Assembly: GCF_006345805.1 (NCBI RefSeq)
Contig: NC_043017.1
Coordinates: 24,614,001 to 24,678,000, forward strand
From: Octopus sinensis
Lineage: Eukaryota
Direction: 5' to 3'
DNA length: 64,000 nt
The notes under the pieces are model-generated. The model was not told where the DNA came from, did not search any database, and saw only the letters and a list, made by a program, of their open reading frames with translations. Position 1 is the stretch's first letter. Every line of letters starts with the position of its first letter. Made by a program: the position numbers and the translations under genes. Positions 1-10,400 of the stretch are shown here, one piece after another.

Positions 1-522
1 GAGTGTCTACAAAACATGTTACTGCGATTAATTCATCAGCAGCAGCATCGGTTTGAGCATCTACTTTTCTCTGCCCACATGGTTTGGACAGAATGGTTTA
101 AGGTAAATTTTATTTATGGCTAGATGCTCTTCCCGCCAGTAATCGTCAACTGTTTCCAAGGTAATATTTCTCCATGGCCAAACATGTTTAGAAGACTGGA
201 ATTGAAGAACACCACTTGTATGACAGTGACACTCATTTACAGCTACCACAGGATGTTATGGCAAGGATTTGGCCAGTCTGGGGTTATAGTAAACACTTGC
301 CTAAGGTGCCAAATAGTTGAACTGAACCTGAAAGCATATAGTTGGGAAGCAAACTTTTTGATCACACAACCATGCCTGTACCTATAACCAAGACTAATAA
401 GGCAAAAAATTGAAGGAACTTGTACGAGACAAAATATAGCAGATTATGGAGTTAAGAAAAATTACTTCTAAACCATACAAATCTGTAAAAGCAAGCAAAG
501 CAAATATAGCCATGAAGAAAAT

Positions 523-592
523 TGCAAGTCCTCATAATTGCAGGATTATCAGCACAAAAGATAATGAAATAGGTTTAAATCATTGGACTGCA
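523..592 (-). ncRNA. SNORD96: Box C/D snoRNA, SNORD96-like (5.8S rRNA Gm75-equivalent guide), in RACK1 intron 3
   Basis: Minus strand reads TGCAGTCC-A-ATGATTT(C box)...GTGCTGA(C')-TAA-TCCTGCAATT-ATGA(D box)-GGACTTGCA. Terminal stem of 8 bp with one bulge. The 10-nt guide is complementary to 5.8S AAUUGCAGGA, and the D-5 base pairs with the G. Confidence 0.85.
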
Positions 593-2086
593 GAAAGAGA
601 ATCCCACCCCACAAAATTTTTTCTGGTTAAAATACGAGTTTGCTATACAGCCTATCTTCACACTCCAAATTTGTCATTTCACAAGACTCACAAATTTTAA
701 ATAGAGGAATTCAGAAAATTAGCAAAATACCTATATGAAATAAATAAAAAAAAAGGTTCTAATTCATATAGGCACAGATGTGGCTGTCTGACACCTCAGG
801 CAAGAGTCTTCTACTATAACCCTGGTGGAAGCTGAAAGATCATAGTATATATGTTTTTTGTCTCCCACCGCTCAACAACTGGTGTTGGTTTGTCTACAAA
901 CCCGTAACTTAGCAGTTCGGCAAAATAGACTGATGAAATAAGTACCAGGCTTCCAAAAATTTGTAAAGTACTTCTGTGGGTGGGTGAGGCAACTAAATCC
1001 TTTCACGGCAGTACCCCAGCATGGTCACATGCAAATGACTGAAACAATAAAATGATCTAGATATTAAGAACCAGGACAGTCTCGGGTGAAATGGTACTAC
1101 CTGATCAAGATCGTTCACATCCAGCTCAACCACATCATCCATCATAATACTGTACAGCATTCAGGAAGTCTGTAGGACAACCAATCTGTGTATGCATAAG
1201 GATGTACCAGTTGTATTTAGCTTTCCAGTAATGCCTTATAAGGCTTACACATGTCAAACAATATCAGTGCTTGTGAGAAGACTAACAAAGTCTTCACAAC
1301 AATGCCTCAAATACATACATCTGTTACAACCACGAGGGCTCAATAAACACAAACAAAACCTAAAATCTAGTCTCCTTCATATACTAATGAAGTAAACATC
1401 ACAACCACAGAAAAAAATGTAAAAAGTTCATTGTGTGAAAGAATGGACTGTTTTCTTCACAGCCCCCCATATCACCAGGATGTTGTAATTGCTACCTAAT
1501 AATTGAAAGTGAATCAGAGCTGTTGTATGGATTCACTGCCTGATAGATTAGTTATCAATCCTTTTAATACTAACCCCTTTGAGACCACCCTTGGGTTAAT
1601 GATACAAACCCATTTTGAAAGTTTTATGTATATATATATCACCCTTTAGCAATCAGATTATTCTGTCAAATGTGATGTTTATACACATTGATTTAAATTA
1701 ATCATGCATTATCTTATGATTGTTTATTTCTAGAATAATATTGTATGGTAAGTGTGAGAAGCCAGATCTAGCCAGGCTGAAGATAAAACAGAGATTATTT
1801 TGGTTAAATGTAGTCAGTTTAAATGTCAAAGGGTTAAATTCCAAATACCAGCTTTTTTTCTTCTCTCTAGTTTCAGCTCAGAGCTGCAGCCATGCTGATG
1901 CACCGCCGTTATAAAAGGTTAAGTCGACGTTGGAGGAATTTGAACTCAGAACGTAAAGCCTGAAGAAATGCCGTTAAACATTTTGCCTAACGTGCTAACA
2001 AATCTGCCGCTAACTCACTTATTGATGACAAAATTATCACATTTCAACAGAAATAGAACAAAAGAACAGGTCAAGTGTTTGTTTTT

Positions 2087-2157
2087 CTGACTCTCAGAAA
2101 TAGGTGTTCTCATTCTACATCAATAGCTAATACAATTTTTTTCCATCATTGAGTCAG
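2087..2157 (-). ncRNA. Box C/D snoRNA in RACK1 intron 3 (candidate 18S guide)
   Basis: Minus strand reads CTGACTC-A-ATGATGG(C)...TGTATTAGCT-A-TTGA(D')-TGTAGA-ATGAGAA(C')-CACCTATTT-CTGA(D)-GAGTCAG. Perfect 7-bp terminal stem with canonical K-turn spacing. The D' guide is complementary to 18S AGCUAAUACA. Confidence 0.8.
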
Positions 2158-2552
2158 ATATAAAGAGTTATGACCTAAGTGATAATAGTTTTAGAGCTTG
2201 TTGAAAACAACACCTGATATTAAAAGCTAAACTGGAAGATGACAATTTCAAATAGAATACAGCATTTAATATGAGAGCAGCAGGAAAATTTAAATAATGG
2301 AATACACCTCATTGATAGGAATAGGTGTGGTAGTGTGGAAAGAGTTTGCTTCCAACTACATGGCTCTAGGTTCAGACCCACTGCATGGCACCTTGGGCAA
2401 AAGTCTTCTACTATAGTCTTGGGGCCAATCAGTCTTTTTGAGTGGATTTAGGCTAATTGTTCAGTAAGGTTATTAAAAAAGTAAATAAAAATTAAGGGGA
2501 GATTAGTAAAAGAAGCAATTCAGTGTTCCTAAACATGAAATCCTCACTCGCA

Positions 2553-2890
2553 AATCTTAGAGGAATTGTGGACTATCATTCAATTAGGAGAAGCTGGAGA
2601 CAACATTCAGTGGTTAGCACAGCGTCAGCTAATTATAAATATGTATACTTGTGAAAATTGCAATTCACCAGTGGCCTTACTACGCGTGGTGATGTCATTG
2701 ATGGGCACGAGATATGTCTCAAGATATTACACACAAGTCTTCTGTCAGCAGTCGAACTACAATTGTGGATTGGTGTAATGTCGTGTTTGGCCCCAACAGA
2801 ATCCCATAGAAATTGGTGGTTTAGATGCTGATGGACAGCCATTGGTTGTAGAAATTGACAAAAGCAAGTTCTTTAATTGTAAGTATCACG
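2553..2890 (+). mobile_element. Degenerate Merlin (IS1016/ISXO2-like) DNA transposase fragment
   Basis: Broken frames give WLAQRQLI..C..C, SRTTIVDWCN (2750-2779) and NPIEIGGLDADGQPLVVEIDKSKFFNCKYH (from 2800), resembling Merlin TIVDW and VEIDESKF..RKY motifs. Confidence 0.7.
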
Positions 2891-3306
2891 TATGGAAACA
2901 AGACATTTGTACTACAGAGCTGGTTTCAGCCGGGTTGGTAACAAAAGGGTTAAGTCATGTATTCCCCTCTTCGGCAAGAAACCAGCTCCCTGTCCATTTA
3001 CCCTACTTTCTTATCCCTAAATACTTATACCGAACTCAGTTGAGAGGGTCTCGTCTTGTGAATACTCGGTGACCTTACCAGTGCCAGTCATGAGAACAGC
3101 ACTTATGGCATTAGGAAAGACATCTAGCTACAGAAACCATGCCAAGGCAGATATCAGAACTTAGGACGTCCCTCTTTTCAACCCATGCCAGCATGGAAAA
3201 AGGGGACATTGAATGACGGTGACAATACACACTCATTTAGTAAGGTGCATGATTATAATACATTTGCATTTGGGTGATGTGAAAGCAAATCAATAGGTCA
3301 ACTCAC

Positions 3307-6308: not shown

Positions 6309-7004
6309 ATTTGTTTTAGTTGTTTTCAATCAGGATTCCTAACGATTAAACTCGTAGAGAAAAATAACCTGATCCACGCCAAATGGCTGCCAACAGGAAG
6401 AGACCTAAAAGGTGGAAGATTAATCTGACTTTCGCAACGAATAAATATTAACTTCCGGTTGAACGATAAATTTTTGCTATTTTGACAATTAAGAAATATT
6501 TTTTAAAGAGAAAAAAAATCATTTAAGTATTTTACTGTGTTTATTTTAATAAAGTGAACGTTTTCAAATATTTAGTTGCATTTGTTGCAGAACATTGTGC
6601 AGGCCAACTGTCATGGACACTGGTGCTCGTCTCAGGGAAGCTATACACATACTTGCACCTTTTGTTTTATTATACGTGTCCATATATAAGTAAATATAAA
6701 ACAAAACTCACCATGCTATATGTATTGAACGAGCTTGTATTTTCATTAGCCTTATATTCAAATCTTGTTAATCGTACGAACGTATATTTACGATCTTCTG
6801 ATCAGTCTACAGACATTGACTACCTGTGATTTCCTGGACTTATATTTATTTATCTTCCGTTCAAACGTTAGTTTTAATTCTTAATGTCTAAAATTTTTTA
6901 ACCTCAAATTATTGCAATTTTATTATATTAAGTTTTCTAAAAGAAAAAAACACAAATTTATTATTCTGTTTGTTTACAGTTAAGTTTATCATACATTTTA
7001 AGCC
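6309..7004. promoter_or_regulatory. Putative bidirectional promoter for RACK1 (-) and PP2A-C copy 1 (+)
   Basis: 696 bp separate the divergent ATGs. RACK1 side: TOP/TCT-like CTCTTCC (6402-6396, -), YY1-like GCCATTT (6387-6381, -), ETS/GABP motif ACTTCCGG (6451-6458). Confidence 0.65.
6867..6979 (+). other. Putative 5'-UTR intron of PP2A-C copy 1
   Basis: GTTAGT donor at 6867 and TGTTTACAG acceptor ending at 6979, 25 nt before the ATG; 113 nt, AT-rich. Confidence 0.5.
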
Positions 7005-7109
7005 ATGGTTGACAGCCAGTGCACAGTTAAAGAATTAGATCTATGGATTAAACAGTTATATGAATGTAACCGACTCTCTGAGACTCAAGTGAAAACATTA
7101 TGCGAAAAA
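7005..7109 (+). CDS. PPP2C-like: PP2A-C copy 1 exon 1
   Basis: [35 protein letters not shown], followed by GTAAAT donor. Confidence 0.93.
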
Positions 7110-7408
7110 GTAAATAACTTTTTAAACTTTCGTGCGCACAATAACAATAATAATTTAGTTGTTTGTTGTTCTCCATCATCATACATAAAGGATACATAAA
7201 GCTAAAAAATCTCTAACAAAAAATAATCTTTGAAAAAAATTAATCGAAGTTGGAGACTCGCGATGTAATTTTTTTTTTTTTTTGGCATTTTTCGATAAAG
7301 GTAAAGGAATTATGAAAGTGTTCGGCAATTTCCGTAAAACATTTTTATTTCTTTAATTTATTTTCGGCCGAATCACTTATATTTATGTATTTTTGGTGCA
7401 TGTATATT

Positions 7409-7439
<31 letters not shown>

Positions 7440-10400
7440 TTGAAAATAGAAAAAGAATGATCACAGTTTAATTAATTTTTTTTATTAATATAAATTTTAG
7501 TTCATAGGTCTTGTCTCCAGCGAGTGCTGTATATATACATACATGCACATACGTAAATATACATTCCATAAAGGAAAGACGGACAAATACATAAATATAC
7601 ACACACAAAAATATATATAAACATAGTATTTACACAGGTGGAGGTAAAGAATACGCACACCACTCGTTTTGGGCGTAACAAAATTCCTAACCCTAATCCT
7701 GAACACCGGGTGTGCATATTCTTTACCTTCGCCTTTACACAAATATACATTCACAAAAAAATACATAAACTGAAGAAAAAAAACTTTCTTACGGAAATTG
7801 CCGAATTAACACTTTCATTTTTCCTCTAGCTTTTATCGAAAGAATACCTTTTTCGCTTTTAAATGGAAATATATATTTAAAAAAAAACAAAAAACAGTTT
7901 AACCTACACAAGTGGTCCACTCCATTCCGAACTTTATTTCCTCATAACTTTCAGAAAAATCGATATCTCAGATTATGTGGATTATGATTATATCGGAATT
8001 TAATGCAGGAAAAAAATAATTGGTGTGCGCTCACACGCACATATTGACACATCACTTCAAAATTTCAAGTTTCATTTTGTATGTAAATATATGTATATGT
8101 GTGCGCCCACCAACTTTTTTTTCATGATCGTAATCTACAGCACTTGAAAGGTATTTGTAGAAAATTTCATTTAAAAATATCCATTTTTCTGAAAGTTATG
8201 AGGAAACAAAGTCGAAAGAGCACACTCGTGCAGGTATGTCAAAATATAGTTGATTGAAATACTGAAACGAAATCCAAAATATTGTTTATAAATTTTATTT
8301 TGTGGACATTTTATTTATTTACTTATGCACTTTTTTGAAAATATCTGATGACACTTAAAAAACGTTACATCTGATGATTTTATAAACGTCATTTCTAATC
8401 AAACCTAAGTCGTCTAAATGCTTTTTCTTGTAATATATCATTTTAAAAGGAAAGTATTGCTGACTCATACGTCTTAAAAAATTAAGAATAAAATTTTTAA
8501 TTGAATACTTATAAATTACGTAAACGTTTCTATTTCCTCATTTATATTCATAATTTTAAAATGAAAGCATTCTTATCTCATTTTATCAGTGTTTTTATAC
8601 GTTCCCATTTTTGAGGAATTTACGCCGCGATTCTCCACATTTACCTTACCAACTTCTTATGAGGATTTAAAATATAAGGATATATATACATAAATTATAC
8701 AATATATAAATTAGCGCAGACGAGGTTAGTAGTCAAGGTTGCTTTGGAATCGGGTGGTTCTTGGTTCAAGATCACTGTGTAGTACGTTGACCAAGTGCCC
8801 TCTACTATTGTTTCAGATAAGTACCCAATCAGCAGAATTTGGTAAATAGGAACTGTTTAGAACATCTCCATCCTATATATACATAGTCAAAATCAGCTTT
8901 AATAATTGATGGATAACTTTCAGACTTCTGTGCTTTTGCATTAACTAACATCGGTTTTCACTTATAATATGCTTATTTGTTCAAATTTATCTCTAATCCC
9001 TAAATCAACTAAACAAAAGATACTTCAAAGAAATCAAACTAATAATTTCGTTTTTGGTTACTTTTTTCTTTATTTTTAACTAAATTAAATTTTTTATTAC
9101 ATATATAACATGTATGTATATGATACATATATAATACAAAAGAAAGACAAAGGGGGGAAAAAGAAAAAAAGGGTGAAAGAAATGGAAGAAAAAAGCATTG
9201 ATGCAGCATCAGGTGATTCAATTGGTTACACACCACAAGGTTCAATGGAACCTACTGAAGCAAGTATGCTCACTGCATTACTATGATCCAGTGGTTTTCA
9301 ACCATGGTTCCGCCAGTACAGTCCAGGGGTTCCACAAGAAGTTACAAAACTGCTAAAATCAGCAGTAATTTTTAATTCTCCTGTGCAGATATGTGTGCTT
9401 AAGACTATTAAATTATTGCACAGGGGTTCCCCGAGCCAGTGGAATGTTTCCTTGGGGTTCCTCGAGCCAGTGGAATGTTTCCTTGGGGTTCCGCTCCAGC
9501 AAAAAGTTTGAAAAGCACTGCTATGATCAAGGCATTGGAAAAGCCAAGCACCCTCTTGGGCATCACCTAACATTTTGGTGAGGTGAGCTGCCAATGATGA
9601 CAAGAATTTTGCCACTAGTGTCCCTCCAAATGCCACAGATTGAATGAGATAGTTCACTGTCAGATCCCGATATGTCAGGTTTTTCTTCTGTTCAGCTATG
9701 GAAGAAGAGACCCTCCCATTTACGACAGCATCCAGGATGTGTGAGAGAGCAAACGAGTCAAAGACTGTGGCGTCCCAGATGAGGCACCTACCTCTTACCC
9801 AGGGACAGAGAGTAAGCCATCACTTCTGGATAATCCCAGCTCCAGAACTGAGGAGATATTAATTCGAGCCAAGGCCTGCTTAATGATTAAGTTTAGCTCA
9901 GTGTGATGAGCAAAGCGACCAGCATTTAGGCAGCAAAACAGATTGTGAAGACCTGTGGTGTCGAGGGTCCTACCTCAGCGACATCTCAGTCCCCTGCAGA
10001 CGTCAACTCCCACTCTGAGTGTGATGGTAAGGCAGAGCTCATCAAGACTGAATAAACCTCTAATGTTGGCCACAGGCAGGGCATCAATTCAGTCCTCCAA
10101 GAATTTTGCACTAGCAGAAAGTAGGTGACACCTTGAAAATGGATCAGATTGATCAAGGAGAGAGTTGAAAGTGGTACCTGAATGCAGATTGTCTCATATT
10201 CTCTGCTTCCGTCTCTCCTCAGCACTTGGTACTGCATTGATGTTTTTTTTTCTTACTCTTCTTTCTTTTTTGCTTTTTTTTCTAAATGGTTTTTGTTTAT
10301 TTTATTTTTGAAATGACATATTAGGTTATACTGGGATATATTTTTGCTTTATATATTGTATAATTACATATAAGGGTGCATAAAGCAATGGTAAGAAATT

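Follow-up and report, generated by a model that had tools for sequence, protein, structure and literature searches.

An intron of RACK1 in Octopus sinensis raises the question of whether a stretch of about 70 nt, positions 522-592 on the minus strand of the window (the whole 64,000-nucleotide stretch of DNA that was analysed), encodes a counterpart of the human box C/D snoRNA SNORD96A, and how the departures of its boxes from the canonical form are to be read. A sequence-only reading of the same DNA had proposed a SNORD96-like guide for 5.8S rRNA within RACK1, with a compensatory change in its boxes. Our analysis confirmed that observation, in that 522-592 on the minus strand is a genuine snoRNA gene and the counterpart of human SNORD96A. 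We put the probability that it encodes the octopus SNORD96 orthologue, an intron-encoded C/D guide for 5.8S methylation, at roughly 85%.

Anatomy of the element

Read on the minus strand from position 592 to 522, the whole gene is 5'-UGCAGUCC A AUGAUUU AAACCUAUUUCAUUAUCUUUUGUG CUGAUAA UCCUGCAAUU AUGA GGACUUGCA A-3', about 70 nt including the terminal stem. The 5' strand of this stem, UGCAGUCC (585-592), pairs in the MFE fold with the 3' strand, GGACUUGCA (523-531), to give 8 bp and one bulged U, and the 3' strand is delimited by covariation as well as by the fold. The complete C/D architecture reported earlier, with its terminal stem and 10-nt guide, was described accurately to within one base. 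The fold z-score of the element (-1.36) is unremarkable, as is usual for C/D snoRNAs.

Both boxes are variants. Box C, AUGAUUU (577-583), fits the canonical RUGAUGA at five of seven positions; the UGAU core is kept, with the G3 and A4 required for sheared G.A pairs, and positions 6 and 7 deviate. Box D, AUGA (532-535), retains the UGA of the canonical CUGA, and its first base, A, pairs with the U at position 6 of box C. Position 7 of box C is also a U and forms a U.U with the nucleotide preceding box D, where most homologues (12 of the 16 in alignment A1, described below) have A-U, so stem II of the window copy should be weaker than that of its sister copy in the same intron.

Between the boxes, the internal region AAACCUAUUUCAUUAUCUUUUGUG (553-576), delimited by sequence reading, lies upstream of CUGAUAA (546-552), a merged, degenerate D'/C'-like motif placed by the Rfam alignment. 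The UGAUAA of this motif aligns with the C'-like UGaUAc in the Rfam SNORD96 consensus and is likewise found in the Sepia copies. The region 553-576 is variable among cephalopod copies, with the exception of the core CAUUAUCU, and may represent an orphan or degenerate D' antisense element.

The guide and its predicted target

The antisense element UCCUGCAAUU (536-545), 10 nt in length, stands immediately 5' of box D and is complementary to AAUUGCAGGA in 5.8S rRNA, a decamer that was assumed for octopus from its conservation in the 5.8S of other animals. The fifth nucleotide 5' of box D is C, opposite the G of AAUUG in 5.8S. In the human 5.8S sequence, AAUUGCAGGA occupies positions 71-80 and the G of AAUUG is G75. 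This +5 geometry agrees with the earlier proposal, made from the D-5 rule, that the guide points to the equivalent of human Gm75. The predicted guide duplex is 10 bp in cephalopods, compared with 11-13 bp elsewhere.

Modification of 5.8S at Gm74/Gm75 is ancient. Human Gm75 has been assigned to SNORD96A/B (PMC11550049). Gm74 was the sole high-confidence Nm site found in Drosophila 5.8S by RiboMeth-seq and was scored as common to Drosophila, human, Xenopus and Arabidopsis (PMC11014333); a later preprint added Um66 to the Drosophila 5.8S sites. Zebrafish 5.8S carries three sites, two of which are in common with human (PMC7668251).

The 14-mer TCCTGCAATTATGA has a single exact occurrence in the 64-kb window, at 532-545 on the minus strand. 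With one mismatch allowed, at least one match appeared in 25 of 100 shuffles (chance expectation, 0.26 per window). Thus, the guide and box D motif is by itself weak evidence, and it is homology that sets the element apart from a chance match.

The host gene

The host was identified by tblastn, with human RACK1 as the query, and by splice-site reading. Exons 1-3 lie on the minus strand (coding sequence at 6308-6200, 4985-4811 and 3454-3307) and form a continuous 144-codon frame with GT-AG introns. All 144 residues are identical to those of a protein common to Octopus vulgaris and O. sinensis (P0243), and two differ from O. bimaculoides. Three minus-strand exons with 144 of 144 residues identical to octopus RACK1 bear out the earlier naming of RACK1 as the host. 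Intron 3 starts at 3306 and extends past the left end of the window. No exon 4 was found by tblastn within 1-3306, and the window is colinear with the O. bimaculoides RACK1 locus (L001), in which exon 4 lies about 1 kb past the left end of the window; we therefore place the snoRNA, sense-oriented, in RACK1 intron 3. Its distance from the 3' splice site exceeds 520 nt, and the intron also houses other snoRNAs.

With the 144-residue query, no cephalopod was found among the matches, all of which were at most 1.75 times the query length. Cephalopod RACK1 accessions were taken from the cluster listing after a query with a chimeric bait of 318 residues, composed of an N-terminus from octopus, a middle segment from oyster and a C-terminus from human. 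Two adjacent accessions had raised the possibility of tandem octopus RACK1 paralogues; this was rejected, since P0241 and the full-length protein come from one sequence, of which P0241 is a truncated product.

The upstream side of RACK1 yielded an observation of its own. In O. bimaculoides, Sepia, scallop, Lingula and amphioxus, RACK1 has a head-to-head upstream neighbour, a gene that encodes a Metallophos-domain protein about 310 residues long, and the two genes appear to form a deeply conserved divergent pair. The upstream regions concerned are 6309-9204 in the window, L001 1-2314 (O. bimaculoides), L004 1-2504 (Sepia), L006 1-1103 (scallop), L007 1-1033 (Lingula) and L008 1-1090 (amphioxus), and that of the window aligns to its O. 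bimaculoides counterpart at 89% identity.

Homologues in RACK1 introns across Bilateria

RACK1 genomic loci from Lophotrochozoa, Chordata and one cnidarian were reached via protein look-ups and were scanned by motif, with Rfam and with covariance models of our own. Homologues were defined by the guide CCUGCAAU(U/G) followed by box D, an upstream UGAU-type box C and a terminal stem.

Two copies each were found in RACK1 intron 3 of O. bimaculoides (L001 7840-7910 and 9303-9375), Argonauta hians (L003 5724-5796 and 6489-6559) and Acanthosepion (Sepia) pharaonis (L004 11520-11594 and 11978-12051), and the element is thus conserved in other cephalopod RACK1 introns. Among the other lophotrochozoans, the scallop Ylistrum balloti carries copies in introns 1 and 2 (L006 2278-2367 and 3372-3461), and the brachiopod Lingula anatina carries one in intron 2 (L007 2487-2577). 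In Chordata, homologues are located in introns 3 and 5 of the amphioxus Branchiostoma belcheri (L008 2964-3034 and 4346-4417), in the intron upstream of the exon starting near residue 175 and in the last intron of the fish Astyanax mexicanus (L010 4210-4293 and 6430-6505), and in intron 2 of the bird Bombycilla garrulus (L012 4014-4093). Intron 2 of the Pongo pygmaeus gene harbours SNORD96A itself (L011 3168-3251; Rfam, 52.5 bits). As the Pongo locus also holds SNORD95 (L011 1698-1765; Rfam, 93 bits), the joint hosting of SNORD95 and SNORD96A by RACK1, cited from human in the sequence-only reading, was verified in a primate.

No BLASTN match to the octopus intron was obtained at E <1e-3 in the Sepia, scallop, Lingula and amphioxus loci, whose homologues come to light only with motif searches or covariance models. 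In the coral Stylophora pistillata, the one cnidarian sampled, no SNORD96-like element was detected in the RACK1 locus (L009) by regular expression or by our covariance models R1 and R2.

The search of RACK1 introns beyond octopus thus recovered the guide in cephalopods, scallop and Lingula, and its presence in both Lophotrochozoa and Chordata suggests that RACK1 and the guide were already paired in the protostome-deuterostome ancestor. This is the parsimonious reading, and it favours the earlier proposal that the host-guide pairing dates to the bilaterian ancestor. The intron used varies by lineage (1, 2, 3, 5 or last): the intron-2 position is common to Lingula, scallop, bird and primate, and the intron-3 position to cephalopods and amphioxus. 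In addition, the presence of two copies in most species indicates repeated duplication within RACK1. A snoRNA-host association that has moved between the introns of one gene is thereby documented for the two major branches of Bilateria.

Detection by Rfam and by independent models

At gathering thresholds, Rfam made no call in the whole 64-kb window, and SNORD96 matches surfaced only in the permissive E-value mode of the search. In that mode, the best family for 527-589 on the minus strand was SNORD96 (RF00055), at 26.6 bits against a gathering cut-off of 43, with an E-value of 0.005 when 321 nt were searched and of 0.11 for 7 kb; U54 (RF00206) came second, at 23.2 bits. The identification as SNORD96-like is upheld by this ranking and by a guide identical to that of primate SNORD96A. 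In the Rfam search suggested with the first description, SNORD96 thus ranked first, at a score under the cut-off. At such a score the octopus element would be missed by standard annotation, and it is plausible that the cephalopod copies are unannotated.

The shortfall extends to every non-mammal homologue examined (24.3-30.9 bits, with the cephalopod copies at 25.5-30.9), whereas Pongo passes at 52.5 bits, and the family is under-detected as a result. The difference is probably due, at least in part, to the canonical-box consensus of the Rfam SNORD96 model. A genome-wide survey in chicken listed U95 in GNB2L1 and no U96 (PMC2653536), and under-detection of the Rfam type may explain that missing U96.

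Two covariance models of our own were also applied. R1 gave 71.6 bits for the window element, but the window sequence belongs to its training set. R2 was built from nine non-cephalopod sequences only, and its detection of the octopus element is therefore independent and not circular; its top match in the window was 522-592 on the minus strand (32.8 bits, E 6.7e-4 over 116 kb), and it also recovered all other cephalopod copies, at 30-46 bits. A well-supported snoRNA gene that score-thresholded Rfam annotation misses is thus added to cephalopod genomes.

Covariation and purifying selection

Alignment A1 comprises 16 sequences, namely the window element, six other cephalopod copies and nine non-cephalopod homologues. 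Invariant throughout, from octopus to Pongo SNORD96A, are the UGAU of box C, UCCUGCAAU of the guide and the UGA of box D. The terminal stem behaves differently, as all eight of its pairs vary on both sides across the homologues; overall, nine of the ten pairs tested change on both sides. Stem pair 8-90, for example, is CG in nine sequences and UA in seven, and is broken in none. Paired cells amounted to 76.9% observed; shuffling lowered the share to 61.8%, and sliding the partner lowered it to 31.9-55.0%. The covariation score was 0.454 as against 0.187 in shuffles, none of 500 of which reached the observed value.

The window element itself is under purifying selection. It is identical to its O. 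bimaculoides counterpart at 69 of 70 positions, compared with 82.6% identity in the flanking intron (binomial P ~2.5e-5). Moreover, when the octopus intron was compared with the Argonauta locus by BLASTN, only three short pieces aligned, namely the two SNORD96-like copies and the second snoRNA of the intron.

The box C-box D pair and its polarity

Position 6 of box C is U in 15 of the 16 sequences and G in Pongo; similarly, box D is AUGA in the same proportion of homologues and CUGA in Pongo alone. The pair formed by these two positions is accordingly UA in 15 sequences, GC in one and unpaired in none, and all non-primate homologues carry UGAUUN with AUGA, as against UGAUGA with CUGA in Pongo. 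The sequence-only reading had taken the U-A pair of octopus for a compensatory replacement of the usual G-C. Covariation of the two positions, never broken in 16 sequences, sustains the compensatory part of that claim; the change itself is not one of octopus or cephalopods. U-A boxes occur in cephalopods, bivalve, brachiopod, cephalochordate, teleost and bird, and G-C in the one mammal sampled. The presence of U-A in every non-mammal examined indicates that U-A is ancestral and that the G-C of primates is derived.

This unusual pair has a precedent in an accepted snoRNA family, as the curated Rfam consensus of U54 has GUGAUUu as box C and AUGA as box D. Other RACK1 snoRNAs vary at the same place. 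In the second snoRNA of the cephalopod intron, described below, Sepia copies have UGAUUA/AUGA and octopod copies UGAUGG/CUGA, and in one Lingula snoRNA the boxes are GUGAUCA/GUGA, so that the box pair is C-G. Since the first pair of stem II may be U-A, G-C or C-G and is never mismatched, selection seems to maintain the pairing and not the identity of the bases. The RACK1 snoRNA family thus offers a clean natural experiment on pairing in K-turn stem II.

Further C/D candidates with non-canonical but complementary boxes (GUGAUUU/AUGA, GUGAUCA/GUGA and AUGAUUU/AUGA) were noted in RACK1 introns, at L007 3473-3555 and 4234-4316 in Lingula and at L008 2483-2561 in amphioxus.

A second snoRNA and the intron clusters

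The same RACK1 intron contains a second complete box C/D snoRNA, sno2, at 2087-2157 on the minus strand, with the arrangement CUGACUC-A-AUGAUGG ... GUAUUAGCUA-UUGA(D') ... CUGA-GAGUCAG. It has weak Rfam C/D matches, scores 28.9 bits with R1 and forms a conserved island against Argonauta. Its D' guide GUAUUAGCUA is conserved in O. bimaculoides (L001 7092-7166 and 8635-8709), Sepia (L004 9487-9565 and 10141-10220) and Argonauta (about L003 6834-6900), whereas its D guide is not conserved. The D' guide is complementary to AGCUAAUAC in 18S rRNA. Its +5 target is the U of AGCUAAUAC, which is U169 in human 18S numbering and is not known to be a human site. Equivalence to the human 18S-U172 site of SNORD45 was considered and is not supported, since with UUGA as box D' the +5 rule gives U169.

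The sno2 of Sepia (L004 9487-9565) shares its terminal stem and variant boxes with the Sepia SNORD96-like copies (L004 11520-11594), and sno2 is probably a paralogue of the SNORD96-like copies with an 18S-directed D' guide. In Lingula, the SNORD96-like RNA (L007 2487-2577) bears both the GUAUUAGCUA-UUGA D' guide and the 5.8S D guide, whereas in cephalopods the 18S-type and 5.8S guides are carried by separate paralogues. This distribution suggests that an ancestral double guide may have been duplicated and its two guides divided between the paralogues.

Four C/D snoRNAs are found in RACK1 intron 3 of cephalopods (L001 7092-9375; L004 9487-12051). In O. bimaculoides they run sno2-96-sno2-96 and in Sepia sno2-sno2-96-96, a difference that points to independent tandem duplications. 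Four snoRNAs in a single intron would also imply a processing route unlike the one-snoRNA-per-intron arrangement of vertebrates.

Taken together, these comparisons can be assembled into a history toward which we lean slightly. The RACK1-5.8S guide would be at least of protostome-deuterostome age, with an ancestrally U-A K-turn; the canonical boxes of mammalian SNORD96A and, independently, of octopod sno2 would have arisen via paired compensatory substitutions; and in cephalopods an 18S(D')/5.8S(D) double guide, of the kind seen in Lingula, would have been duplicated within one intron and partitioned. If this is true, the RACK1-5.8S guide ranks among the oldest stable associations of a snoRNA with its host in animals.

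Two other features of the Argonauta locus were recorded. A palindrome in RACK1 intron 3 (L003 6907-6991) is probably an inverted repeat or the end of a transposon; its matches to mir-7131, one on each strand, score 43.9 and 41.3 bits and stay under the cut-off of 74. Elsewhere in the locus, L003 10095-10169 on the minus strand matches a tRNA.

Proposed function and alternatives

We infer that the octopus snoRNA is expressed by co-transcription with the RACK1 pre-mRNA and is then released from intron 3, among several other snoRNAs. SNU13, NOP56, NOP58 and fibrillarin would assemble on the AUGAUUU/AUGA K-turn, closed by the terminal stem, and protect the RNA. The first Watson-Crick pair of stem II in this K-turn would be U-A instead of G-C, in what is presumably the ancestral form, and a switch to G-C would have taken place in the sampled primate lineage. 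The 10-nt antisense element is predicted to pair with AAUUGCAGGA, provided that octopus 5.8S has the conserved sequence, and fibrillarin would then 2'-O-methylate the G that corresponds to human Gm75 and Drosophila Gm74, at a distance of five pairs from box D.

An unlikely alternative, though the one that survives best, is that the window copy (copy A) is a redundant or decaying duplicate and that the work is done by a sister copy nearer exon 4, outside the window. O. bimaculoides, Argonauta and Sepia indeed have two copies each in the same intron. In O. bimaculoides, copy B carries a UGAUUA that allows the A-U second pair, sits some 140 nt from exon 4 and outscores copy A both with Rfam (29.5 vs 25.5 bits) and with R2 (42.9 vs 30.6); copies A and B are distinguishable by sequence in the 5' half. 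The sister copy could thus be the main producer, given the U.U, the 10-bp guide duplex and the distance of more than 520 nt to the 3' splice site in copy A. Decay is nevertheless hard to reconcile with a copy A in which boxes, guide and stem are all intact, which is nearly identical between two octopus species amid diverged flanks, and which also forms an alignable island against Argonauta.

Less likely still, the element could be a working C/D RNA that acts mainly in something other than 5.8S modification, either an orphan D' function or control of RACK1 splicing or expression through pairing inside the intron. The D'-region core CAUUAUCU is common to octopod copies and one fish copy, and a pairing of intronic snoRNAs with the intron sequence next to them has been described (PMC10324135). 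However, the D' region differs between paralogues and has no clean D' box, and, boxes aside, the 5.8S guide is the only element invariant from octopus to primate. As for the possibility of no gene at all, only short motifs that happen to coincide in AT-rich intron DNA, the one-mismatch expectation and the Rfam E-value of 0.11 on 7 kb would allow it, but it is effectively refuted by the compensatory stem changes among sixteen homologues in the same host gene from four phyla, by the conserved islands that stand out against Argonauta in otherwise unalignable introns, and by detection with the independent model R2.

Comparison with known systems

The octopus element is a member of the known SNORD96 family and not a new kind of system. 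Its closest likeness is primate SNORD96A (U96a, RF00055; RACK1/GNB2L1), with which it shares the antisense element 5' of box D, the predicted target 5.8S G75, the host gene, the sense-intronic arrangement, and the order of terminal stem, box C, internal region, guide and box D. The two differ in their boxes (GUGAUGA/CUGA with G-C in primate, AUGAUUU/AUGA with U-A in octopus) and in their setting, as primate SNORD96A is alone in intron 2 and the octopus RNA lies in intron 3 beside other snoRNAs. Their internal regions are unalignable, and the octopus RNA is shorter by about 10-15 nt.

Drosophila snoRNA:Me5.8S-G74 (snoRNA:CD34), which is assigned to 5.8S Gm74, the fly counterpart of human Gm75 (PMC11014333; PMC13228274), is a functional equivalent of the octopus guide; a literature search for its host gene gave nothing usable. 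U54/SNORD54 has the same U-A variant K-turn, but its guides and targets differ, and the likeness is limited to the boxes and the generic C/D layout.

SNORD95 is the second snoRNA of vertebrate RACK1, in place of which the second snoRNA of octopus carries an 18S-directed guide. Two SNORD95-like copies were observed in the RACK1 gene of the fish Astyanax (L010 5500-5565 and 6062-6131; 33.6 and 24.9 bits, under the cut-off), and both keep the conserved D guide AGAGGCUGUUU-CUGA. A SNORD95-type guide was absent from the cephalopod, scallop, Lingula and amphioxus RACK1 loci by regular expression and Rfam, so SNORD95 may be a vertebrate addition to RACK1.

The searchable literature contains no account of cephalopod snoRNAs, of a non-vertebrate SNORD96 in RACK1 or of U-A as the ancestral boxes, an absence that is not proof. 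Within a known family, then, what the octopus locus adds is a deep conservation of the host, a corrected polarity for the box change and the under-detection of the family by Rfam.
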